NCBI GenBank assembly: GCA_002269645.1 | Contig: NIVC01001170.1 | Coordinates: 62,001 to 126,000 of the forward strand | Reading direction: 5' to 3' | Source of the DNA: Macrostomum lignano | Taxonomy: Eukaryota | DNA: 64,000 nucleotides | Shown: positions 410-31,818 of the stretch, piece after piece | Numbering within the stretch: the first letter of the stretch is position 1 | Layout: each line of letters starts with the position of its first letter | Notes under the pieces: generated by a model | What the model was told of the DNA's origin: nothing | What the model saw: only the letters and a program-made list of their open reading frames with translations | The model's database searches: none | Position numbers and translations under genes: made by a program

Positions 410-5450
<5,041 letters not shown>

Positions 5451-10300: not shown

Positions 10301-11858
10301 TAGACACAGAGAGTCAGTAGACACAGGGAGTCAGTAGACACAGAGAGTCAGTAGACGTAGACACAGAGAGTCAGTAGACACAGAGAGTCAGTAGACGTAG
10401 ACACAGGGAGTCAGTAGACACAGGGAGTCAGTAGACACAGAGTCAGTAGACACAGGGAGTCAGTAGACACAGAGAGTCAGTAGACACAGAGAGTCAGTAG
10501 ACACAGAGAGTCAGTAGACACAGAGTCAGTAGACACAGAGAGTCAGTAGACACAGAGAGTCAGTAGACACACAGAGAGTCAGTAGACACAGAGAGTCAGT
10601 AGACACAGAGAGTCAGTAGACACAGAGTCAGTAGACACAGAGAGTCAGTAGACACAGAGAGTCAGTAGACACAGAGAGTCAGTAGACACAGAGAGTCAGT
10701 AGACGTAGACACAGGGAGTCAGTAGACACAGAGAGTCAGTAGACGTAGACACAGGGAGTCAGTAGACACAGAGAGTCAGTAGACGTAGACACAGGGAGTC
10801 AGTAGACACAGGGAGTCAGTAGACACAGAGTCAGTAGACACAGGGAGTCAGTAGACACAGAGAGTCAGTAGACACAGAGAGTCAGTAGACACAGAGAGTC
10901 AGTAGACACAGAGAGTCAGTAGACACAGAGTCAGTAGACACAGAGAGTCAGTAGACACAGAGAGTCAGTAGACACAGGGAGTCAGTAGACACAGAGAGTC
11001 AGTAGACGTAGACACAGGGAGTCAGTAGACACAGAGAGTCAGTAGACGTAGACACAGGGAGTCAGTAGACACAGAGAGTCAGTAGACGTAGACACAGGGA
11101 GTCAGTAGACACAGAGAGTCAGTAGACGTAGACACAGGGAGTCAGTAGACACAGGGAGTCAGTAGACACAGAGTCAGTAGACACAGGGAGTCAGTAGACA
11201 CAGAGAGTCAGTAGACACAGAGAGTCAGTAGACACAGTCAGTAGTCAAGAATATATAGTCAGTCAGGAGTCAACGATAAAGATGGACATCTCAAAACCCG
11301 CAGACCTACTTCCCGCTGCCGCACCGTCGCACCGTAGTGCCCAGCATGTTTGCCGTGCCGAAAAATCTTGAGCGCCTCTTGTCGCCAGAGTTGCACAAGT
11401 ATGCCTACGTATTGGACCGGGCCACTGTCCAGTTCGAGCCAAACGATCCGCAGTACGTTCGAATTCGCGACCGAGTCTACGAAGCCGTCGACGAGGCCAA
11501 GGCCTACGCCGAGCTGCAGGCTACTCGCCATTTCGGCGGCCTAGTATTGCACCTAGTGTTAAAGCAGAAAACTGCCGGATTAATCGTATTCCTACTGCAA
11601 ACTGAACAGTTTGAGCGTTGCTTGCATCTGCTCAGACTGCGCACGGCTATACACGATTCGGACGCTAAAGCTTTGCAGAACTACGATTTACCGTTTGTAC
11701 TTAACGACGCGAAATCGTTTGATAATCAACGCAAAATTGGTTTATTAGTGTGTCTGATGAAGCTGGAACCGACCGTGTCCAGAGTTGCCAAGCCGCTGTT
11801 GGAGCGGTTTCGACAGGCTAGCGTTGTTGGTCGGCATCGATCGGATAGTCAGAGCTAA
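7348..11858 (+). CDS. MRPS22: Mitochondrial ribosomal protein S22; exons 7348-7719, 9466-9669, 11304-11858 (possible extra 5' exon 6631-6664)
   Basis: Phase-0 GT-AG joins. Segments LLNEAQLQE..QMPPYL, DRFMAIRESNGQLR..ERRDLLQTYFP and QFEPNDPQYVRI..LQATRHFGGLV match recalled MRPS22 motifs (QFEPDS.EY, LRSTRYFGGM). Confidence 0.88.
7865..8190. repeat. 23-bp minisatellite ATCCACCCTAATCCATCCTGAAG
   Basis: Visible tandem array in MRPS22 intron 1. Confidence 0.93.
8303..8470 (+). ncRNA. Box H/ACA snoRNA, copy 1 (MRPS22 intron); 5' pocket matches 18S CCUU-U-G-UACACACC
   Basis: Hairpin 1: TTGCATTG/CAATGCAA and CCAAGCCAGC/GCTGGCCTGG. H box ATATTA at 8377-8382. Hairpin 2: CAGGC/GTCTG and GTGTCGATTGC/GCAATTGACAC. 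ACA at 8465-8467, 14 nt below the pocket. Confidence 0.82.
8660..9415. repeat. 23-bp minisatellite GAGAGTCATGCCCTAATCACTGG
   Basis: Visible tandem array in MRPS22 intron 1. Confidence 0.96.
9692..11245. repeat. 17-bp minisatellite CAGAGAGTCAGTAGACA with variants
   Basis: Visible tandem array in MRPS22 intron 2. Confidence 0.96.
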
Positions 11859-15806: not shown

Positions 15807-16313
15807 ATGTCAACCAAGCGTTACGACGACGACGACGGCTGCAAAGTGTACATCGGCGACCTGCCGCGCGACGCTTCGGAGTCAGAAATTGAGAAAGCGT
15901 TCCGGCACTACGGCGCCGTCCGCTCCGTTTGGGTTGCCCGCAATCCGCCCGGCTTTGCCTTTGTTGTATTCGAAGATTCGCGCGACGCTGGCGACGCTGT
16001 ACGCGATCTAGACGGCACCGTCATCTGCGGAGTTCGGGCTCGAGTTGAACTGTCCAGCGGCCGGTCGCGAGCCCGCCGACCCGGCCAGGGCGGCTTCGGT
16101 GGCGGCGGCGGTGGCGGCGGCGGCCGAGGCGGCGGCTGCTACTCGTGCGGCCGGCCCGGTCATTTCGCTCGCGAGTGTCCCCGACTGCGCGGCGGCGACC
16201 GCGACAGGGACCGGTCTAGGGACAGGGACCGCGATCGCGGCGGCCGCTACGACGATCGGCGGCGTCGGTCGAGGTCGCGCTCGACTCGCTCCCGGTCCCG
16301 ATCTAGGAGCTGA
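15807..16313 (+). CDS. SRSF7: SR splicing factor, SRSF7/SRSF3-like (RRM + CCHC zinc knuckle + RS), paralog A, intronless CDS
   Basis: [54 protein letters not shown] tail. Probable 5'UTR intron from donor gtaagt (~14857) to acceptor ttcaag (15787). Confidence 0.93.
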
Positions 16314-18495: not shown

Positions 18496-19534
18496 ATGTC
18501 CCGCCAAGAGATGGGCCGCCGAGTGTACGTGGGCGATCTGCCAGGCGGTGCGGACGAACGCGACATTAAATCGGCGCTGCGCAGCTTCGGCGAACTAGAA
18601 TCTGTCTGGGTGCACGGTCGCGGCACCTATGCTTTTGTTACTTTTCGAGAACGCCGCGACGCTGAAGACGCCGTTAGAAGTCCGCCAAGAATACGCGGTG
18701 CAAGGGCTAGGTAAGGAGACTCCCGTAGCCTAATGGTCTAGCGCTGTGCTCTGATGTGCCAGCGGCCCAGGCTCGATTCCCCAGTGCAGTCACATTACAT
18801 AATTTGGGGCTAAACTGGAATCCCGGCTTGGCTCTGCTCGTGCAATTAACGCCCTGAGGGCCAACCCCCAAGGCACAGTAAAGTGTACATGCCAAACGAT
18901 AAATAAAGTTAGGGCCGCTGTACACTCCTGTGTGAGTGTGTGCCTGTGCGTATGACTGCGTACGTATCCGCGCGCTTGTGTGCCTGCTCAGGGGAGTCGG
19001 CGGAATGGGCAGCAATGCCTCTTGCCGGTTGTGTAACAATGGCGCTTAAAGTGCTCCAGGGTGTGTACTTTGAATCAATTGCCATTCATGCACACGCTCA
19101 CATAGGATGTACACCTTGACTTTACACATTCAACAATAGCTGTTTATTTTTTCCAACTTAGACTGGAACTGGCCAAGCACGAGAGGCGTCCCGCAGCTGC
19201 CGGCGGAGGAGGCGGTGGCGGAGGCGGCGGTGGCTTTCGAGGCCGCAGTCCGCGCGACGACCGGTGCTACAGCTGCGGCCGCAGCGGCCACTACGCTTAC
19301 GAGTGTCCGAGTCGAGGCGGCCTTGGCGGCCGCGGCAAGTACGGCGGTCGATCGCCCAGTCCGACAAGAGATCGGGGTGGCGGCAGCGGCGGTAGCCGAA
19401 GCAACCGAGGTCGCGATCGGGACCGGAGCCGCAGTCGCAGTCGTGGCCGAAGCCGCAGTCGCAGCGTCGATCGTCGTCGAGACCGCGGCAATCGCGGCGG
19501 CAGCAGCAGTCGGGGCAGCAGTCGCAGTCGCTAA
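18496..19534 (+). CDS. Second SRSF7-like protein (divergent RRM + zinc knuckle + RS), paralog B; exons 18496-18710, 19162-19534
   Basis: RRVYVGDL..AFVTFRERRDAEDAVR; phase-2 GT-AG join gives RARLELAK; CYSCGRSGHYAYECP; RS repeats to TAA at 19532-19534. Confidence 0.9.
18718..19062 (+). mobile_element. SINE family B, copy 2 (inserted just after the donor of the SRSF paralog B intron)
   Basis: TAGCCTAATGG..GGCTCGATTCC head and a body matching 4765-5060. Confidence 0.82.
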
Positions 19535-20625: not shown

Positions 20626-21275
20626 TGCAAAAGTAGTTTGTATTGACAATTGAAATCGCTGAGACTGGAACTAAAACTACACTATATTACTCATAGCGAT
20701 ATATGCAAGTATATTATGTTAGGACATCCAAGATTGTGTAGTAACGTCACAAATGCTATGTTTCTTTCATATTTTTATGAACTTGTTTAGCGTAAAATAC
20801 CCAATAATTAATTAGACAAGTTCGACTCGGCGCATCACATATCGGCCCAGTGACTGTACAAAATCACTTTGGTTGCGCAGAACAGTGCTTGCGCATCTGT
20901 GAGTTTTTTGTTTGCGTTATAGCTTTCTGCAATGCTATAATTATATAATTATTGCCTTGAAATGTCACTATAGTAATTAATATTCAAATTCAATTAGGAC
21001 ATTATAGTGTGAAGTTGTTCATATGAACAACTAATAATTATGTTAATACCTTAATGACAAATAAATATGCCACTATTTGGGCACCTGCTAGTTTGCTGTT
21101 TAACTTGCTGTTGAATTTATTAATTTGTATTTTTTTTGTTTTGGTGTATTTTATTCATACTTATTTTCTTATATTAACTTAAGTCTAAAAGCACCTGTCG
21201 ATGCACTAATTTACAGGTAAATAATAAAAGCTGAGATCAATACTGTTTATTGACAAAATAATTTAATCGCGGCAC

Positions 21276-22563
21276 ATGAAGCCCAACCAGCCGCCACCGC
21301 TACCGCCGCATTCCAATTTGCCGACGTCGCACTTCTCCGCCGCAGCCGCCGCTGCCAGCCTCCAGCATCATCAGCACCACCAGCATCAGCTGTTGCAGCA
21401 GACTCGAGCTGATAACGAAGAGCGACAGCGCTTTCAGGTAATACCTACTTGGGTACAGGTGGCCGCTGTAACCTGTGGAACAGAATACATATCCCTTTAC
21501 CATAGAATCGCCCATTTATCCCAAAGAATCGCCCATCCATCCCATAAAATCGCCCATCCATCCCATAAAATCGCCTATCTCTACCATAGAATCGCCCATC
21601 TACCCCATAGAATCGCCCATCTACCCCATAGAATCGCCCATAGATCCCATAAAATCGCCTATCTGTACCATAGAATCGCCCATCTATCCCATAGAATCGC
21701 CCATCCATCCCATAAAATCGCCTATCTATACCATAGAATCGCCTATCTACCCCATAGAATCGCCCATCTACTCCATAGAATCGCCCATCATCCCATAGAA
21801 TCGCCCATCTATCCCATAGAATCGCCCATCTATCCCATAGAATCGCCCATCTATCCCATAAAATCGCCCATCTATACCATAGAATCGCCCATCTATCCCA
21901 TAGAATCGCCCATCTATCCCATAGAATCGCCCATCTATCCCATAGAATCGCCCATCTATCCCATAGAATCGCCCATCTATCCCATAAAATCGCCCATCTA
22001 TACCATAGAATCGCCTATCTATACCATAGAATCGCCTATCTACCCCATAGAATCGCCCATCTACCCCATAGAATCGCCCATCTATCCCATAAAATCGCCC
22101 ATCTAACTATGGATACGCAAAGAATTAAACAGCCTATGTTTATTCATCCCAACCACATCCCACCCCGCAGGTTGAACTAGAGTTCGTCCAGTGCCTGGGC
22201 AATCCGAATTACCTGAACTTCTTAGCCCAGCGTCGCTTCTTTGAGAAACGCGAATTCATCAACTACTTAAGCTACCTGCAGTACTGGAAAGAGGCGGACT
22301 ACGTCAAGTACATCAAGTACCCATTCTGTCTGCAGCTGCTGGATCTACTGCAGCATCAGCAGTTTCGCAAAGACATCGCTAAAACAGGCCTAGCTAGGGA
22401 AGTTGACGAGCAGATCCTATTGCATTGGCAGCACTATATACCTAAGCGGCATCGGTTGCTAACTAGACAGGCCAATCAGCAACTGCAGGAGCAGCAGGAG
22501 CAGCAGCAGCAGCAGGGCGTCGATGGCGGATCCGTTCCAGCATCAACAGCTGGCCGGTCGTGA
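21276..22563 (+). CDS. MED31: Mediator subunit 31 (SOH1); exons 21276-21437, 22171-22563
   Basis: RQRFQ|VELEFVQCLGNPNYLNFLAQR..FINYLSYLQYWKE..Y.KYIKYPFCL..LDLLQ..FR is the SOH1/MED31 signature. TGA at 22561-22563. Confidence 0.95.
21497..22105. repeat. 21-bp minisatellite ATAGAATCGCCCATCTATCCC (MED31 intron)
   Basis: Visible tandem array; the unit is a multiple of 3 and produces spurious long ORFs. Confidence 0.95.
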
Positions 22564-24891
22564 AGGCGGCGGCGGAAATCGCGGCTCGGACGATTGTCTT
22601 GACGAGCTGATCGACCGACTGCGCGGTATTCGGCGAACACTGTGCTCCTTGATTGCTAAAGTTGACGAGAAGCGTCCGGCCACCTGGCCTGAGGTAAGGT
22701 GACTGGCGGCAATTGTCCTGATTCTTTGTTTGCGCTTGTCTGTCATGTGGTTTCGATTTCCCTGGCTAACTAAGGGTTGTCGGATTGTCTCTGAGGTTGT
22801 CAGAATCTGTCTCTGAGGTTGTCAGATTCTGTCTCTGAGGTTGTCAGATTCTCTCTGAGGTTGTCAGATTCTGTCTCTGAGGTTGTCAAATTCTCTCTGA
22901 GGTTGTCAGATTCTGTCTCTGAGGTTGTCAGATTCTCTCTGAGGTTGTCAGATTCTCTCTCTGAGGTTGTCAGATTCTCTCTCTGAGGTTGTCAGATTCT
23001 GTCTCTGAGGTTGTCAGATTCTCTCTGAGGTTGTCAGATTCTGTCTCTGAGGTTGTCAGATTCTCTCTGAGGTTGTCAGATTCTCTCTCTGAGGTTGTCA
23101 GATTCTGTCTCTGAGGTTGTCAGATTCTCTCTGAGGTTGTCAGATTCTGTCTCTGAGGCTGTCAGATTCTCTCTCTGAGGTTGTCAGATTCTGTCTCTGA
23201 GGTTGTCAGATTCTCTCTGAGGTTGTCAGATTCTGTCTCTGAGGTTGTCAAATTCTCTCTGAGGTTGTCAGATTCTGTCTCTGAGGTTGTCAGATTCTCT
23301 CTGAGGTTGTCAGATTCTCTCTCTGAGGTTGTCAGATTCTGTCTCTGAGGCTGTCAGATTCTCTCTCTGAGGTTGTCAGATTCTGTCTCTGAGGTTGTCA
23401 GATTCTCTCTGAGGTTGTCAGATTCTGTCTCTGAGGTTGTCAGATTCTCTCTGAGGTTGTCAGATTCTGTCTCTGAGATTGTCAGATTCTGTCTCTGAAG
23501 TTGTCAGATTCTGTCTCTGAGGTTGTCAGATTCTGTCTCTGAGGTTGTCAGATTCTGTCTCTGAGGTTGTCAGATTCTGTCTCTGAGGCTGTCGGATTCT
23601 GTCTCTGAGTTTGTCAGATTCTGTCTCTGAGGTTGTCAGATTCTGTCTCTGAGGTTGTCAGATTCTGTCTCTGAGGCTGTCGGATTCTGTCTCTGAGGTT
23701 GTCAGATTCTGTCTCTGAGGCTGTCAGATTCTCTCTCTCAGGTTGCCAGATTCTCTCTCTCAGGTTGCCAGATTCTGTCTCTGAGGTTGTCAGATTCTGT
23801 CTCTGAGATTGTCAGATTCTGTCTCTGAGGTTGTCAGATTCTGTCTCTGAGGCTGTCGGATTCTGTCTCTGAGGTTGTCAGATTCTGTCTCTGAGGTTGT
23901 CAGATTCTCTCTCTCAGGTTGCCAGACTCTGTCTCTGAGGTTGTCAGATTCTGTCTCTGAGGTTGTCAGATTCTGTCTCTGAGGTTGTCAGATTCTGTCT
24001 CTGAGGTTGTCAGATTCTGTCTCTGAGGCTGTCGGATTCTGTCTCTGAGTTTGTCAGATTCTGTCTCTGAGGTTGTCAGATTCTGTCTCTGAGGTTGTCA
24101 GATTCTCTCTCTCAGGTTGCCAGACTCTGTCTCTGAGGTTGTCAGATTCTGTCTCTGAGGTTGTCAGATTCTGTCTCTGAGGTTGTCAGATTCTGTCTCT
24201 GAGGTTGTCAGATTCTCTCTGAGGTTGTCAGATTCTGTCTCTGAGGTTGTCAGATTCTCTCTGAGGTTGTCAGATTCTCTCTGAGGTTGTCAGATTCTCT
24301 CTGAGGTTGTCAGATTCTCTCTGAGGTTGTCAGATTCTCTCTGAGGTTGTCAGATTCTGATGTTTCAAACTTATTTAAATTACTGAGGTGAAGCAAGTGT
24401 CAGATAAATTTTGTCTTCAACAACGCCAAACAAACCGCCAACTACAGATTCTGAACTGCCTGGCCGAGTGCGTCTCCCAGCTCTCCGCCCTGCACCGCAC
24501 CCTGCGCAACGAGAAGCAGCTTCGTTTAAATGATTTCGCTCTACTACCAATTGGCCTGAGTCCGCAGCTCGATCAGCACCTGTTGAACCACACAGAAGGC
24601 CGTCTCGGCCTGCTTAATCACGACAGCGTGCCGCACTATCTGCGAACTAAACTCGACCTGAGCGTTGAGCACAGGCGCAACGAGTTTCAGAAATCCAGCA
24701 CTAACATTGAAGCTCAGCCGAGAACGTCCGAGCAGATGCGTAAAGCGGCCGAGACCGCATTGAATTCATTGAAACAGGCCAGGCCGGACTTTGAGAATGA
24801 GCAGTCGGAGCGGAACCAGACTATGCGTAGCAATGAGCAGGATACGGCTAAACTGCTGCTAGCCATTAACTTTGGTATTGGACTCAATTGA
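22523..24891 (+). CDS. MED8: Mediator subunit 8; exons 22523-22693, 24448-24891; start overlaps MED31 3' end
   Basis: LDELIDRL..TLCSLIAKVD..TWPE|ILNCLA..QLSALHRTLRNEK..LLPIGLSPQLD..TEGRL..HDSVPHYLRTKLD..LLLAINFGIGL matches recalled MED8 (TWPSVLD, TEGRVPVFSH, VPDHLRTKPD, AVAFGKGL). Clean gtaagg/ctacag phase-0 intron. Confidence 0.9.
22780..24358. repeat. 20/22-bp minisatellite CTCTGAGGTTGTCAGATTCT(GT) (MED8 intron)
   Basis: Visible tandem array. Confidence 0.96.
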
Positions 24892-25294
24892 CTCAGTTTC
24901 GCTGTCTCACACTGTGCTGCTCACATCTCTTATTCATTATTCTCTGCATGATTGGTTCCCTAACGATTTGACCTTCCGGTGACCCTTAGTAATACTTCAT
25001 TTATTGTCTCAATGCTTTATATCTTGTAATTACTAATATCAAGCTTAGCATTCTAATTAAATGTGAATTGTATTAAAGAATAAACACGCTTATCGTTCAT
25101 TACTTATTGATATATTTAAATACAAAAATGTTTCTTTTAATTGGCATATAATTAATGTTTGGTTTTTACTGTTAATGTTGTTAATAAAGCTACTAATTAA
25201 TAACATACTAATTATTATGCATGCATTCTCGACTGAGCAGCCATTCTCAAGCTATAAGCTAGACAACAACGATTCGGAGGTACAACCGAGATAA

Positions 25295-26698
25295 ATGTCC
25301 CAGCTGCTACTGGGCTATGCCAGCCGCCTGCTAGGCTGTCAGTCTCGCTCGGGCTCGGCCGCAACAACCGCTGCCGCCGCCGCCATTCTCAGCCAGCAGC
25401 CGGTGCGGCACAAATCGCCTCTACAGAAAGTTCGCAAGCGCGGCCCGTTTCCGGAATGGACCAAGACCGACCCGGACCCGCACCTGTTCACGCGGCACAT
25501 TCCCAAAACTGACGAGCGTCGGACTAAAGCTGTCCGGCCGCCTGGCAAGTACCAGATATTCAGCGTGCACTACGATCCTATTGTAAACAGCTTTGCTGGA
25601 CACTTTGTCAAATGCGGCGAGCGAGACAAATTGCGCGACGTGTTCACCCAGATGATGGCAGAGATCAAGCACATCCAGATGGCCCGGCGAAACGCCGCGC
25701 CGCCTGAGGAGAAAGCGTCCATTGAGGCTAGTTCACTCTGGGATTGGAAATCTTTGGGAGTAGGAAATCCTTCGAGATCTTCCCAACCAAATAGATCCTG
25801 ATCTGCTGGGCCAGCCTCCCAAATCCTCGGTTGCTGGGCCACTGCTCTCCCAGATCCTCAGTTGTTGGGCCACCGCTCTCCCAGATCCTCAGTTGTTGGG
25901 CCACCGCTCTCCCAGATCCTCAGTTGTTGGGCCACCGCTCTCCCAGATCCTCAGCTGCTGAGACAGCCTCCCAGATCCTCAGTTGTTGGGCCACCGCTCT
26001 CCCAGATCCTCAGCTGCTGAGACAGCCTCCCAGATCCTTAGTTGCTGGGCTACCGCTCTCCCAGATCCTCAGCTGCTGAGACAGCCTCCCAGATCCTTAG
26101 TTGCTGGGCCACCGCTCTCCCAGATCCTCAGCTGCTGAGACAGCCTCCCAGATCCTCAGTTGCTGGGCCACCGCTCTCCCAGATCCTCAGCTGCTGAGAC
26201 AGCCTCCCAGATCCTTAGTTGCTGGGCCAGCCTCCCAGATCCTCAGTTGTTCGGCCACCGCCACCCTCCCAGATCCTCAGCTGCAGAGACAGCCTCCCAG
26301 ATCCTCAGTTGCTGGCCCAGCCTCCCAGATCCCCGGTCTTTCTACAGCCATAGAATTCCACTAACTAAGCCTCACCATCGCTGCAGGTGGACCCCACTCG
26401 CGTCATACACAAAGCCGTTGAGAACTGCTCACCTCTGCTCATCATTAAGCACGTGTTTCGCGGCGGCTTCCTATACAAAGTGCCCTGCCCGCTGCGCGAG
26501 TCGGAGAGTCAAATGCGAGCGTTTAAATTTCTGCGAATTGCGTCAAACGTTCGCGGCACTAAGGAGCACCTGTACCGCTCGCTGGCCAGGGAGCTGGTGA
26601 ATGCCAGCAACAATGAAGGCAAAGCTGTGCACGCCAAATTGCAATTGCACAAAACATGCGAAGAGAACAGGGCCTATGCTAATTATCGTATAACCTGA
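25295..26698 (+). CDS. MRPS7: Mitochondrial ribosomal protein S7 (uS7m); exons 25295-25726, 26387-26698 (GC-AG intron favoured)
   Basis: Arg/Ser/Ala-rich targeting-like N-terminus. AAPPEEKASIE|VDP..HKAVENCSP..GGFLYKVPCPL..ELVNASNNEG..K..LHKTCEENRAYANYR matches uS7m. Confidence 0.92.
25790..26335. repeat. 28-bp GCTGGGCC family minisatellite, locus 2 (MRPS7 intron)
   Basis: Visible tandem array with variants. Confidence 0.94.
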
Positions 26699-27560: not shown

Positions 27561-27657
27561 TTCGTTTTTTAGAATTTTTGCTGCATTTAACTACTGTTAG
27601 TAGTTGTTCATAAACTTTTCAATATTGACATTTTACTTATGTCTGAAAGCAGCGCCC

Positions 27658-30600
27658 ATGCAAACAGCAATTCACGGCGCAGATTCTCTCTGCAACCCTG
27701 GCGGAAATTCCGAGGAGCAGCAGATGCCGCCGCCTCCTCCGCTGTCACCGCCTGCAGTCCATCAAGATGACGACAAAGACGAATTAGACGAAGCTCCGTC
27801 GTTTGCCGAATCCGCGCTGTTGAAGCAGCGCTCCAGACGGCGTTGGCTTCGGCGCATACGTCGGCGCCAAGCAATCCGGCGCCACTCTCTGGCGCACCTG
27901 TTCGGCTTGCTGCACCCGGACCAGCTCAGCCGGGTGCTCGGCAAGTCTGGCTTCGATCCCGAGGCCTACGTGACCGGCATTCGCCGATTGGCGGCTCCGC
28001 CACCGCCAAAGCTGCCGTCCTCCCTGCTGCTGTCCATGACTTCGGCGGCTACCGCGTCCAAGGCAGCGGCGCCTGTCAGCGACGATGCAACCAAGGCGGC
28101 TACAACCGCAACGTCGAATGCGGGCCCGACGGCGACCTCCGTGCTGCGGCACAGGCGAGTTCAGAGCGCCGGTGGCGACTCGTCGACTAGCGAGGCCGTT
28201 CAAAAGTCTGCCGAGGAAGTTGTGAGTTGCATTGCGGTCTGCTGCCGCTGCGAACTGGAGTAGCCTGGGGTTTCTTGGGATATTGCGGGAATTTGCGGCT
28301 GAGCAGCCAGCCTCCCAGATCCTCAGTTGCTGGGCCAGCTTCCCAGATCCTTAGTTGTTGGGCCAGCCTCCCAGACCCTCAGTTGCTGGGCCAGCCTCCC
28401 AGACCCTCAGTTGCTGGGCCAGCCTCCCAGACCCTCAGTTGCTGGGCCAGCCTCCCAGACCCTCAGTTGCTGGGCCACCCTCCCAGATCCTCAGTTGCTG
28501 GGCCAGCCTCCCAGACCCTCAGTTGCTGGGCCAGCCTCCCAGACCCTCAGTTGCTGGGCCAGCCTCCCAGACCCTCAGTTGCTGGGCCACCCTCCCAGAT
28601 CCTCAGTTGCTGGGCCAGCCTCCCAGACCCTCAGTTGCTGGGCCAGCCTCCCAGACCCTCAGTTGCTGGGCCACCCTCCCAGATCCTCAGTTGCTGGGCC
28701 AGCCTCCCAGACCCTCAGTTGCTGGGTTCTGGGTTTGTATTTTATTGCAAATGTATTCTAATAGAATTCTTAGAAAGTCCATATTCAAATTCGCGCGCCC
28801 GAAACTCAACACTGCCAGGCCGCCAGTCTGCTTTCCACGCAGGACGCAGCCGGCAACACGCGCAACCCGGCTGACTTCAAGAACATCTTCCTGAAGGGCA
28901 CCCAGTCGGCCAATCCGCACAATGACTACAGCCAGCACTTTGTTGACACCGGCCTGAGGCCGCAGAATTTCATTCGCGATGCCGGCCTGGCCAACCGGTT
29001 TGCTGAATACCCGAAATTGCGCGAGCTTATTCGGCTGAAGGACGAACTTGTGAAAGAGACGGCTACTCCGCCCATGTATCTCAAGTATGTATTAACTTCT
29101 CAAGTAACAGTTACCTAGAATTTTCTCTATTGTCACCCTCAGATTTCTCCCAATAGTCTCATATTATCATCTTCCTAATTGCCCCATCATAATATTCCCA
29201 GTTGCCCCTTCATAATTTTCCCAGTTTCCCCATCAAAATTTTCCCAGTTTCCCCACCATCATTCTCCCAGTTGCCTCATCATAATTTTCCCAGTTGCCTC
29301 ATCTATCATAATCTTCTCAATTGTCTCATCATAATCTTCCCAGTTGCCCCGTCAGAATCTTCCCAAAAGCCACCATCAGAATCTTCCCAAAAGCTACCAT
29401 CAGAATCTTCCCAAAAGCCACCATTTGAATCTTCCCAAAAGCCACCATCTGAATCTTCCCAAAAGCCACCATCAGAATCTTCCCAAAAGCTACCATCAGA
29501 ATCTCCCCAAAAGCCACCATCAGAATCTTCCCAAAAGCCACCTTCAGAATCTTCCCAAAGCCACCTTCAGAATCGTCCCAAAAGCCACCTGCCACCATCA
29601 AAATCTTCCCGATAGACGTACACCTTCAGAATCTTCCCAATCGTCACTTGCACCTCTAATTCCCAAACACCAGGTGCGACCTGCTCACCTTCAACTTGAA
29701 CGATCTCAACTGCAAATTTGACGCCATCTTGGTCGAGCCGCCACTCGAAGAGTACAACATATCGCACGGCGTTTATTACCCTCGCTATTGGTCCTGGGAC
29801 GAAATTGAACAGTTGAAAATTGAGGAGATCACCGCCCCCCGCTGCTTCGTGTGGCTCTGGTGCGGCAACGGCGAGAGTCTGGAGCACGGCCGCCGCTGTC
29901 TGCGCAAATGGGGCTTCCGTAGGTGCGAAGATATCTGCTGGATCAAGACTAACAAGGGCCGGCCAGGACACAAGCTGGTAGGCGGATTGTTTCTGGCAGT
30001 TAGATGTTCCTGATATTGGGGTGCGCTTGCCCCGTTGGATGATTGTTGGATTTTAGGGATTGTGAAGCTTGGGGATAATCATAAATTATGGGGATTGTCA
30101 TGAATTTTTGTGATTGTCATGAATTTTTGGGATTGTGAAGCTTGGGGATAATCATTAATTATGGGGATTGTCATTAATTATAGGGAATGTCATGAATATG
30201 GGGATTATCATGAATTATAGGGATTGTCATGAATTTTTGGGATTGTGAAGCTTGGGGATAATCATGAATTATGGGGATTATCATGAATTATAGGGATTGT
30301 CATGAATTTTTGGGATTGTGAAGCTTGGGGATAATCATTAATTATGGGGATTGTCATTAATTATAGGGAATGTCATGAATATGGGGATTGTCATGATATT
30401 TGGGGATTGTGAAGCTTCGGGATAATCATGAATTATGGGGATAATCATTAATTATGGGGATAATCATGAATTTTGGGGATTGTAAAGCTTGGAAAATGTC
30501 ATGAATTTTGGGGATTGTGAAGCTTGGAAAATGTCATGAATTATGGGGATTGTGAAGCTTGGAAAATGTCATGAATTATGGGGTTTGTGAAGCTTGGAAA

Positions 30601-31818
30601 ATGTCATGAATTATGGGGATTGTGAAGCTTGGAAAATGTCATGAATTATGGGGATTATCATGAATTATAGGGAATGTCATAAATTATGGGGATTGTCGTG
30701 AATTATAGGGAATGTCATAAATTATGGGGATTGTCGTGAATTATGGGGAATTTCATGAATTTTGTGGATTGTGAAGCTTGGAAGATGTCATGAATGATGG
30801 ATATTGTGAAGCTTGGAAAATTTCATGAATTATGGGGATTTGTGAAGCTTGGAAAAGGTCATGAATTATGGGGATTGTGAAGCTTGGAAAAGGTCATGAA
30901 TTATGGGGATTGTGAAGCTTGGAAAAGGTCATGAATTATGGGGATTGTGAAGCTTGGGGATTGTCATGAATTATGGGAATTATGAAGTCTGGGGATTGTC
31001 CTGAATTATGGGGATTGTGAAGTTTGGGGATTGTCATGAATTATGGGAATTACGAAGTCTGGGAATTGTCATGAATTATGGGAATTATGAAGTTTGGGGA
31101 TTGTCATGAATTATGAGGATTGTGATGTTTTTTACAGAGTCATTACGGAGTGCGATATAACTGCGGAACGTGACGAAACGCCCCCCTTCCTTCTGTCTGT
31201 TAAAGTACAACTGCTCGCACTTTTAATCCTCACCCTTAATCGCAGGTGGAGGCGGAGACGGCCCTATTCCAGCAGACCAAGGAGCACTGCCTCATGGGTA
31301 TCAAGGGCACGGTTCGCCGCTCCACTGATGGCGACTTCATCCATGCCAACGTTGACATTGACCTCATCATGCACGAGGAGCCGGGCTGGGGCCAGAAGGC
31401 GCACCCAGCCGAGCTGTTCAACATTATCGAGCACTTCTGTCTGGGCAGGCGCCGGCTGCACCTGTTCGCCAGGGACGACACCGTTAGAAAAGGCTGGCTG
31501 TCCCTGGGCCCCGAGCTGGCCGCTTCGAACTTCGATTCGCGCATCTATTCTGGCTATTTCAGCCGCGACGCGCAGGCCCACCTGACCGGCTGTACAGAGG
31601 AGATCGAACGCCTGCGGCCGAAATCTCCGCCGCCCAGAAATTCTGCTGCCGGAGGCAAATCGGCCTCGGCGGATGATGCCGGCGGAGGCGGCAGCAGCGG
31701 CGGCCCGTCTGTGGCCATTGGAGCGATGCAGCAGCCGGCGACAATCTATCCCATGCAGCCGCCTCCCCCGCCTGGGATTATTGCCCCAGCAGCGACTGTG
31801 CCTAATCCCATGCAGTAA
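27658..31818 (+). CDS. METTL14: m6A methyltransferase non-catalytic subunit METTL14; exons 27658-28221, 28843-29084, 29674-29977, 31246-31818
   Basis: [54 protein letters not shown] (degenerate EPPL), [61 protein letters not shown]. All joins are GT-AG and in frame. Confidence 0.97.
28300..28727. repeat. 28-bp GCTGGGCC family minisatellite, locus 3 (METTL14 intron 1)
   Basis: Visible tandem array. Confidence 0.95.
29340..29640. repeat. 24-bp minisatellite CCATCAGAATCTTCCCAAAAGCCA (METTL14 intron 2)
   Basis: Visible tandem array. Confidence 0.92.
30050..31110. repeat. Composite minisatellite GGGGATTGTCATGAATTAT / GTGAAGCTTGGAAAATGTCATGAATTAT (METTL14 intron 3)
   Basis: Visible degenerate tandem array. 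Confidence 0.9.

Follow-up and report, generated by a model that had tools for sequence, protein, structure and literature searches.

The stretch of Macrostomum lignano DNA analysed here, 64,000 nucleotides (nt) of contig NIVC01001170.1 (assembly Mlig_3_7, GCA_002269645.1) that is called the window throughout and whose own numbering supplies the coordinates, carries on its + strand the genes for two subunits of the Mediator complex, MED31 and MED8, and the coding sequences of these two genes overlap in different reading frames. MED31 is encoded by two exons (21276–21437 and 22171–22563, +) that together form an open reading frame (ORF) of 555 nt specifying 184 amino acids (aa), and the product matches the Pfam family Med31 (PF05669) with a value of 6e-37 over profile positions 2–94 of 95. 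Exon 1 (54 codons) begins with the ATG at 21276 and ends at the donor CAG/GTAATA (21438), and exon 2 encodes the Med31 domain and a glutamine-rich tail that terminates at a TGA (22561–22563). The phase-0 intron between them (21438–22170) consists almost entirely of a 21-nt minisatellite present in 29 copies (21500–22105). MED8 also has two exons (22523–22693 and 24448–24891, +), which encode 204 aa in 615 nt, and its product matches Pfam Med8 (PF10232, 6e-28) and is 100% identical to the M. lignano protein PAA71343.1 (BOX15_Mlig020072g2) in GenBank. The first MED8 exon (57 codons) ends at the donor GAG/GTAAGG and is followed by a phase-0 intron (22694–24447) containing about 74 copies of a 22-nt minisatellite (22775–24359), and the second exon ends with a TGA at 24889–24891. 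A 14.4-kb locus taken from the GenBank record of the same contig (L002) is identical to its part of the window.

The overlap between the two ORFs is 41 nt long (22523–22563, +). Towards its end MED31 exon 2 reads ...CAG GGC GTC GAT GGC GGA ... CGG TCG TGA, with the MED8 ATG embedded in the MED31 codons GAT-GGC and the MED31 TGA embedded in the MED8 codons CGT-GAA. Within the region 22100–22700, ATG occurs only at 22109 and 22136, both of which lie in the MED31 intron, and at 22523. This last ATG, the sole possible start of MED8, is shifted by +1 from the MED31 frame. Upstream of this ATG the MED8 frame is closed by a TAA at 22460–22462 and is open from 22463, and a CTAAC sequence occupies positions 22459–22463. 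The description of the sequence in an initial annotation of the window proved correct throughout; this annotation had also stated that neither a spacer nor a polyadenylation signal separates the two genes. The latter statement was confirmed by the 41-nt overlap itself and by a search for hexamers: no AATAAA or ATTAAA is present from 22171 to 25056, and no variant hexamer is present in 22400–22900. The first AATAAA located 3' of either ORF is at 25079–25084 (+), 188 nt past the MED8 stop, and is presumed to be a shared poly(A) signal; a second is at 25183–25188. Any MED31 mRNA must reach into MED8, since the MED31 stop codon is within the first MED8 exon, and with no poly(A) signal ahead of 25079 it most likely ends beyond that position.

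The different-frame overlap of MED31 and MED8 was confirmed to be biologically real, beyond chance or error. M. lignano DV1 carries duplicated chromosomes, and two further paralogous copies of the locus, on NIVC01000884 (L003) and NIVC01000309 (L004), keep the same junction as the window, giving three loci in total. In L004 the CAG tract has an in-frame deletion of 3 nt and there are a few substitutions relative to the window, with the +1 offset retained. The UniProt entry A0A1I8I420 (1171 aa, named METTL14) is a chimeric model that joins MED31, MED8, mitochondrial ribosomal protein S7 (mRpS7) and METTL14, and it crosses from the MED31 frame to the MED8 frame by means of an impossible 7-nt 'intron', GTTCCAG (22534–22540). 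The need for this pseudo-intron means that the assembly underlying the model has the same frame offset. Another UniProt entry, A0A1I8I7C4 (679 aa), is a similar chimera of the end of mRpS7 and METTL14. One of the explanations put forward in the initial annotation was an assembly indel that hides an ordinary in-frame fusion gene, and it is true that a (CAG)n tract, where length errors are typical, precedes the overlap and that a fused model exists in UniProt. However, the offset is present at all three separately assembled paralogous loci (L002, L003 and L004), among which the tract differs by only 3 nt, as well as in the assembly behind A0A1I8I420 and, with a different overlap length, in cDNA from an independent species (L001). 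An assembly indel is therefore refuted, and its chance of being correct is practically nil.

The cDNA, a Logan contig from SRR30276804, comes from a related species that is separate from M. lignano. Its MED8 and MED31 products are 74–75% and 79% identical, respectively, to those of M. lignano, and just 50–60% of the codons at conserved residues are identical, indicating that the two species are well diverged. The contig is intronless: MED31 exon 1, MED31 exon 2, MED8 exon 1 and MED8 exon 2 are continuous, the MED31 intron has been removed by cis-splicing, the MED8 exon junction is identical to that in the window, and the sequence runs through the MED31/MED8 junction without a branch. It extends from MED31 exon 1 to 38 nt beyond the MED8 stop and lacks both transcript ends. 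Both ORFs are seen on one spliced RNA of this related species. The overlap in this RNA measures 35 nt and is again in the +1 frame, with GAT-GGC-GGA enclosing the ATG and CGT-GAR enclosing the TGA, as in M. lignano, and the MED8 frame is open 5' of its ATG from position 385. Conservation of the overlap in a related species had been proposed as a check in the initial annotation, and the cDNA retains its frame and both embeddings. Conservation of this architecture in a diverged species shows that the overlap is maintained by selection. Codon identity between the two species is 10/14 within the first 20 MED8 codons and 64/137 elsewhere; the slightly higher value at the MED8 start would fit dual coding, although the numbers are small.

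After splicing, the sequence between the MED31 and MED8 start codons contains no ATG in any frame over 511 nt (21279–21437 plus 22171–22522, +). A dinucleotide-preserving shuffle of this stretch gives an expected 4.9 ATGs and a probability of 0.0024 of observing none. The paralogous locus L003 is the same as the window in this respect, and L001 has no ATG in 498 nt (P=0.035). For comparison, the number of internal ATGs is 5 in the 615 nt of MED8 and 11 in the 744 nt of mRpS7. MED31 has no internal methionine, which is true of just 4 of 120 homologues, the usual count being 2–3. With the protein sequence taken as given, out-of-frame ATGs would be wholly absent with a probability of 0.22 in M. 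lignano and 0.18 in L001. The MED31 AUG is in a weak context, with C at −3 and A at +4; the MED8 AUG has T at −3 and G at +4 in M. lignano and A at −3 and G at +4 in L001. An AUG-poor first cistron combined with a weak start context is an experimentally validated hallmark of leaky scanning in Drosophila and green algae (PMC11892635), and the first cistron here is depleted of AUG in all frames, as expected of a bicistronic mRNA of this kind. MED31 ORFs free of internal methionine and followed by an unrelated ORF were also noticed in three metatranscriptome cDNAs (L005, JGI 3300018974; L006, JGI 3300018901; and L007, Logan ERR1712126), the second ORF being a phosphomevalonate kinase or a glutamate-receptor ligand-binding fragment. 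In one of them a poly(A) tail and a template-switch 5' end are both present, and the contigs look like other bicistronic MED31 transcripts. These methionine-free MED31 homologues from Tara metatranscriptomes lend no support to a general rule, however, as their MED31 ORFs contain out-of-frame ATGs.

The setting of the two genes resembles an operon. In M. lignano about 30% of the genes receive one and the same 35-nt spliced leader (SL; CGGTCTCTTACTGCGAAGACTCAATTTATTGCATG), and about 15% belong to operons; the repeat-adjusted spacer is typically about 100 bp and the SL acceptor motif is [T/C]TNCAG (PMC8629364). In the GenBank annotation, a transcriptional unit was split into genes only if SL or poly(A) reads supported the cut, ORFs were then called with TransDecoder, and genes were named after their transcriptional unit according to a stated rule (PMC5730564). 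By this rule MED8 and mRpS7 of the window share a unit prefix (Mlig020072.g2 and Mlig020072.g3), and in the other two copies MED8, mRpS7 and METTL14 are all named Mlig030536.gN, so that MED8, mRpS7 and METTL14 form one co-oriented transcriptional unit, as is expected of an operon. The next cistron after MED8 is mRpS7 (25295–26698, comprising 25295–25726 and 26387–26698, +), followed by a METTL14-like gene with an MT-A70 domain (27653–31818, +, the end being that of the last ORF with an MT-A70 match). These co-oriented + strand housekeeping genes with common unit prefixes place the MED31-MED8 locus within an operon-like unit. The METTL14 coding sequence (CDS) in GenBank is 5'-partial and starts with 'PMQ...' at the first full codon after an acceptor AG (27651–27652), the genuine ATG being at 27658. 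The SL sequence ends in AUG, and if joined at the METTL14 acceptor, within 27640–27662, it would give AUGCGCCCAUG, in which the SL AUG is out of frame and 5 nt before the real AUG. The SL AUG would consequently have to be bypassed in METTL14, which makes leaky scanning plausible in M. lignano.

The junction between MED31 and MED8 differs from what would be expected between two cistrons of such an operon. The poly(A) signal between cistrons is absent, the MED31 stop lying in the MED8 CDS, and in place of an SL acceptor in a spacer of roughly 100 bp between stop and start the spacer is −41 nt and the MED8 CDS is complete. Indeed, the MED8 CDS in GenBank is complete in 3/3 copies, in contrast to the 5'-partial METTL14. 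A MED8 model starting within 22463–22522 or at 22541 would, given the presumed behaviour of the pipeline, have been called 5'-partial, and a complete CDS therefore implies that the annotated mRNA begins upstream of the TAA at 22460, either inside or before the MED31 coding sequence. No M. lignano MED31 protein is present in the protein collection that was searched, for any of the three genomic copies. These copies are located at 21276–22563 in the window, at 4712–6041 in L003 and at 5110–6041 in L004, and the best database match, which is from an insect, is 51% identical. The missing MED31 protein would fit an annotation procedure in which a single CDS is kept per transcript, the longer MED8 (204 aa) being retained over MED31 (184 aa).

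We propose that MED31 and MED8 are translated from one bicistronic mRNA, that MED8 is reached by leaky scanning, and that this mRNA is part of a larger SL-resolved operon with mRpS7 and METTL14 downstream, a proposal to which we assign an even chance. One mature mRNA would contain both MED31 and MED8, spliced, polyadenylated after 25079 and possibly SL-capped at its 5' end. It would be derived from the longer co-oriented unit, from which mRpS7 and METTL14 would be split off by SL trans-splicing. Ribosomes that halt at the first AUG (21276), with its weak context, would make MED31, whereas a fraction of the scanning 40S subunits would pass 21276, travel through the 511 AUG-free nt of the MED31 ORF and initiate MED8 at 22523, 41 nt before the MED31 stop. 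The overlap would then be a by-product, the poorly conserved MED31 tail running on until the TGA formed by the Arg-Glu codons of MED8. Among the explanations offered in the initial annotation, the bicistronic mRNA is the best supported, by the lack of a poly(A) signal between the ORFs, by the spliced L001 cDNA that contains both of them and by a MED8 model that begins upstream of 22460. The coupling of termination to reinitiation that had been suggested along with it is less likely than leaky scanning, in view of the AUG-free MED31 ORF and of the lack of a UGGGA motif and of significant structure.

Several points weigh against this proposal. Both the role of the bicistronic RNA as mature template in M. 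lignano and the initiation of MED8 by leaky scanning are inferred, and L001, which lacks its ends, might represent an incompletely processed precursor or result from the de Bruijn merging of transcripts that overlap. The comparison of complete with partial CDSs depends on our reading of the annotation pipeline. The AUG-desert statistic is post hoc, having been devised after the sequence was seen, and the absence of out-of-frame ATGs is by itself not significant (P about 0.2), the desert being mostly a consequence of the lack of methionine. Neighbouring genes likewise have start codons outside the Kozak consensus (T or C at −3), which leaves the argument from weak context with little power to discriminate. 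In addition, the overlap contains a sequence that fits the SL acceptor consensus, TTCCAG (22535–22540), and an SL added at this site would place its AUG in the MED8 frame. Finally, about 30% of M. lignano genes are trans-spliced, and the downstream genes of operons normally are (PMC8629364).

These last points lead to the main rival, in which a separate MED8 mRNA is produced by SL trans-splicing onto an acceptor in MED31 exon 2, in the overlap (TTCCAG, 22540) or at the 3' site of the MED31 intron (22170), and MED31 is produced solely by those pre-mRNAs that are not trans-spliced. With an acceptor upstream of 22460, MED8 would still be reached by scanning through AUG-free MED31 sequence. This rival was reasonable as raised in the initial annotation, given that operons in this species are resolved by the SL, and the proportions of trans-spliced and operonic genes, the defined acceptor motif and the unit prefixes common to MED8, mRpS7 and METTL14 all speak for it, as does the preservation of the TTCCAG, as part of GTTCCAG (22534–22540, +), in all three M. 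lignano copies in a position that serves the MED8 frame. There are also four CTGCAG sites in MED31 exon 2, and in parasitic flatworms cis- and trans-splicing often use the same acceptors (PMC12582326). However, TTCCAG is not found at the same place and frame in L001, the CTGCAG at 22483 is CTGCTG in L004, and L001 passes the junction without a branch. The completeness of the MED8 CDS in three copies argues against an SL-defined 5' end at 22463–22549, and the specific acceptor region suggested in the initial annotation, 22470–22515, would have yielded a 5'-partial CDS. In-frame use of the SL AUG at TTCCAG (22540) or at CAACAG (22549) was rejected as an explanation of its own and is considered only within this rival: the predicted products of 199 and 196 aa, respectively, are absent from the protein collection, the TTCCAG site is unconserved in L001, and such use is at odds with the complete CDS in GenBank. 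As the initial annotation had noted, there is no pyrimidine-rich acceptor between the genes; no T-rich tract is present, and the AGs around the junction are poor in upstream pyrimidine, with 5–23% T compared with 42% at the METTL14 acceptor. Polypyrimidine content was nevertheless set aside as a weak discriminator, the local cis acceptors being pyrimidine-poor as well. The gene numbers missing from GenBank (Mlig020072.g1, Mlig030536.g2 and g4) could represent separately cut MED31 models; as a test of this the numbering is ambiguous, as they may equally belong to the upstream SRSF7-like gene. Trans-splicing just 5' of the MED8 AUG would also leave the AUG desert unexplained. Overall, we regard a separate trans-spliced MED8 mRNA as possible but doubtful.

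The other alternatives are less probable. Two independently transcribed overlapping genes, with MED8 either having its transcription start site in the MED31 intron or exon 2 or using an alternative 5' exon that skips the MED31 ATG, are unlikely. Skipping of exon 1 would indeed make 22523 the first AUG, exon 2 having none before it, human MOCS2 employs alternative first exons to such an effect, and the window and L003 both have a donor-like GTAAAT 59 nt 5' of the MED31 ATG; against this, the GTAAAT is lost in L004 (CTAAAT), the MED31 intron is nearly pure minisatellite with a unique 3' end whose ATGs at 22109 and 22136 would precede MED8, and L001 joins MED31 exon 1 to exon 2 and runs on into MED8. 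Termination-reinitiation, in which the 40S subunit would step back 38 nt from the MED31 stop (22561–22563) to 22523, shares the evidence for a bicistronic RNA and is, if anything, slightly more unlikely still. Stop and start are within about 40 nt of each other in both species (41 and 35 nt), and AUG scarcity near the stop is also favoured under reinitiation (PMC11892635). The AUG desert, however, extends over the entire ORF and takes in sites that are over 400 nt away from the stop, where it is not needed for reinitiation. Inspection by eye of some 120 nt ahead of the stop in the two species revealed no UGGGA, the 18S rRNA-complementary motif of the termination upstream ribosome-binding site (TURBS) type, and local folding is not significant (fold z=+0.30 and −1.14). 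Moreover, reinitiation after an ORF of 184 codons is normally inefficient without a dedicated element. A programmed +1 frameshift at UCG-UGA that yields a MED31-MED8 fusion protein, as the initial annotation had also envisaged, is very unlikely. The +1 relation is conserved in both species, and no stop interrupts the MED8 frame between its ATG and 22463 (position 385 in L001), but this open frame is explained by CAG repeats, which are stop-free in every frame. The shift codon differs between M. lignano (UCG UGA A) and L001 (CCG UGA G), the fold values just given provide no significant downstream structure to stimulate a shift, and the MED8 ATG and 'MA' start, which would be superfluous in a fusion, are conserved in both species.

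The + strand genes of the window that are co-oriented with MED31 and MED8 span 11337–31818 and comprise, in order, an mRpS22 fragment (11337–11858), two SRSF7-like genes, MED31, MED8, mRpS7 and METTL14. The SRSF7-like genes, which encode an RNA-recognition motif and a zinc knuckle, are located at 15837–16181 and at 18496–18711 plus 19046–19531, and the window copy appears to be unannotated in GenBank. On the − strand there are a dynamin gene at about 37–39 kb and a SYDE-like RhoGAP gene at about 59 kb. The sole intron of mRpS7 (25727–26386) is of the GC-AG type (GAG/GCTAGT...CAG/G) and is kept in the three copies (10497–11036 in L003 and 8286–8825 in L004). It is filled by a minisatellite with 31/59-nt units (25793–26332). 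Each of the three introns inspected is thus dominated by a minisatellite of its own, with units of 21 nt (21500–22105), 22 nt (22775–24359) and 31/59 nt (25793–26332), and the lengths of these introns vary among the paralogs, the span of the MED8 gene being 2369, 3661 and 1448 nt in L002, L003 and L004, respectively. The MED31 intron of Macrostomum lies between the residues RFQ and VELEF, a position that is not shared with Clonorchis sinensis (L010, 10001–11992); the introns of the Clonorchis gene sit elsewhere, at positions that are intron-free in Macrostomum.

An SL-like remnant is found on the + strand at 21195–21222, 59 nt 5' of the MED31 ATG (CTGTCGATGCACTAATTTACAG/GTAAAT). At the corresponding site L004 (about 5030–5060) reads AATTGCATG, identical to the final 8 nt of the SL, and L003 (about 4630–4660) has TTTCATG/GTAAAT where the window has TTTACAG/GTAAAT following CTGTCGATGCACTAATTT (compare CTGCGAAGACTCAATTT in the SL). 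The paralogs differ in a cluster exactly at this remnant, with flanks that are nearly identical. The remnant may be a relic of the retroposition of an SL-bearing mRNA or a fragment of an SL RNA gene. A scan of the whole window against Rfam gave no match and revealed no SL RNA gene.

In summary terms, there is an even likelihood that Macrostomum keeps MED31, a subunit of the Mediator middle module, and MED8, a head subunit, together on a single mature mRNA as cistrons that overlap, the overlap being conserved between well-diverged Macrostomum species, with the ratio of their output set by leaky scanning through an AUG-purged ORF. If so, a second, translation-level form of polycistrony would exist inside an operon that is resolved by trans-splicing, and operons of this type could hold gene pairs that are never separated. 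The locus would also provide a clean animal case of two subunits of a transcription complex encoded on one mRNA in overlapping frames. It would further suggest that annotation with one CDS per transcript hides more such bicistrons, and 'missing' proteins, in flatworm genomes, pipelines of this design systematically missing upstream cistrons. In practical terms MED31 is effectively unannotated in M. lignano, the only public protein that contains it being the chimera A0A1I8I420. Transgenesis is already available in M. lignano, which makes the bicistronic reading testable in the animal itself.

The pairing of MED31 with MED8 appears to be specific to the Macrostomum lineage: in two compact genomes MED8 has other neighbours, and in Clonorchis there is no MED8 within 10 kb after MED31. 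A profile search for further Macrostomum MED8 or MED31 transcripts, in a collection from which M. lignano RNA-seq assemblies are evidently absent, gave only matches of ≤38% identity, all from unrelated compact genomes in which the two genes are not adjacent. A literature search returned no report of a MED31/MED8 dicistron or of bicistronic genes in Macrostomum, and the supplementary tables of PMC5816591 and PMC5730564 have no entry for these genes. The arrangement is nonetheless rare rather than unprecedented, being of a type that is already known in animals.

Among known systems, human MOCS2 encodes two subunits of one enzyme, MOCS2A and MOCS2B, in overlapping ORFs, and alternative first exons give each subunit its own mRNA. 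MED31 and MED8 resemble this pair in that two subunits of one complex are encoded in different-frame overlapping ORFs at one locus. In viruses, a second ORF that starts tens of nt before the stop of the first is translated by coupled termination-reinitiation, as in pneumovirus M2-1/M2-2 and in the TURBS-dependent systems of caliciviruses and influenza B. Unlike these systems, MED31/MED8 shows neither a TURBS-like motif nor significant structure, and its AUG depletion is ORF-wide. The SL operons of flatworms and nematodes (PMC8629364, PMC12582326) are similar in having co-oriented housekeeping genes in one unit, here with a METTL14 model that starts at an AG acceptor, but the MED31/MED8 junction has no poly(A) signal, spacer or annotated SL acceptor, and its stop is downstream of its start. 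The bicistronic genes of the green algae Chlamydomonas, Auxenochlorella and Chromochloris (PMC11892635) are likewise conserved, with a weak ORF 1 start and few AUGs before ORF 2, and their first ORF is short (medians of 291–357 nt, compared with 555 nt for MED31). The distance between the ORFs is very short or absent in the algae, whereas in the metazoan MED31/MED8 pair it is negative. The closest animal parallels are stoned (stnA/stnB) and Snapin of Drosophila, described as leaky-scanning dicistrons (Wall, Phillips & Kelly 2005, J Biol Chem 280:27670, as cited in PMC11892635). Like MED31/MED8, these are animal nuclear genes that encode two full-length proteins, on one mRNA in Drosophila and probably so in Macrostomum, with a first cistron that is AUG-deficient and whose start is non-consensus, apparently so in MED31 as well. 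According to that citation, leaky scanning gives ribosomes access to the second cistron of stoned and Snapin. The ORFs of these two genes are separated by a spacer, whereas MED31 and MED8 overlap by 41 nt in different frames. They differ further from the Drosophila pairs in that their products are subunits of one complex and in that the unit that encodes them lies within an SL-resolved operon.

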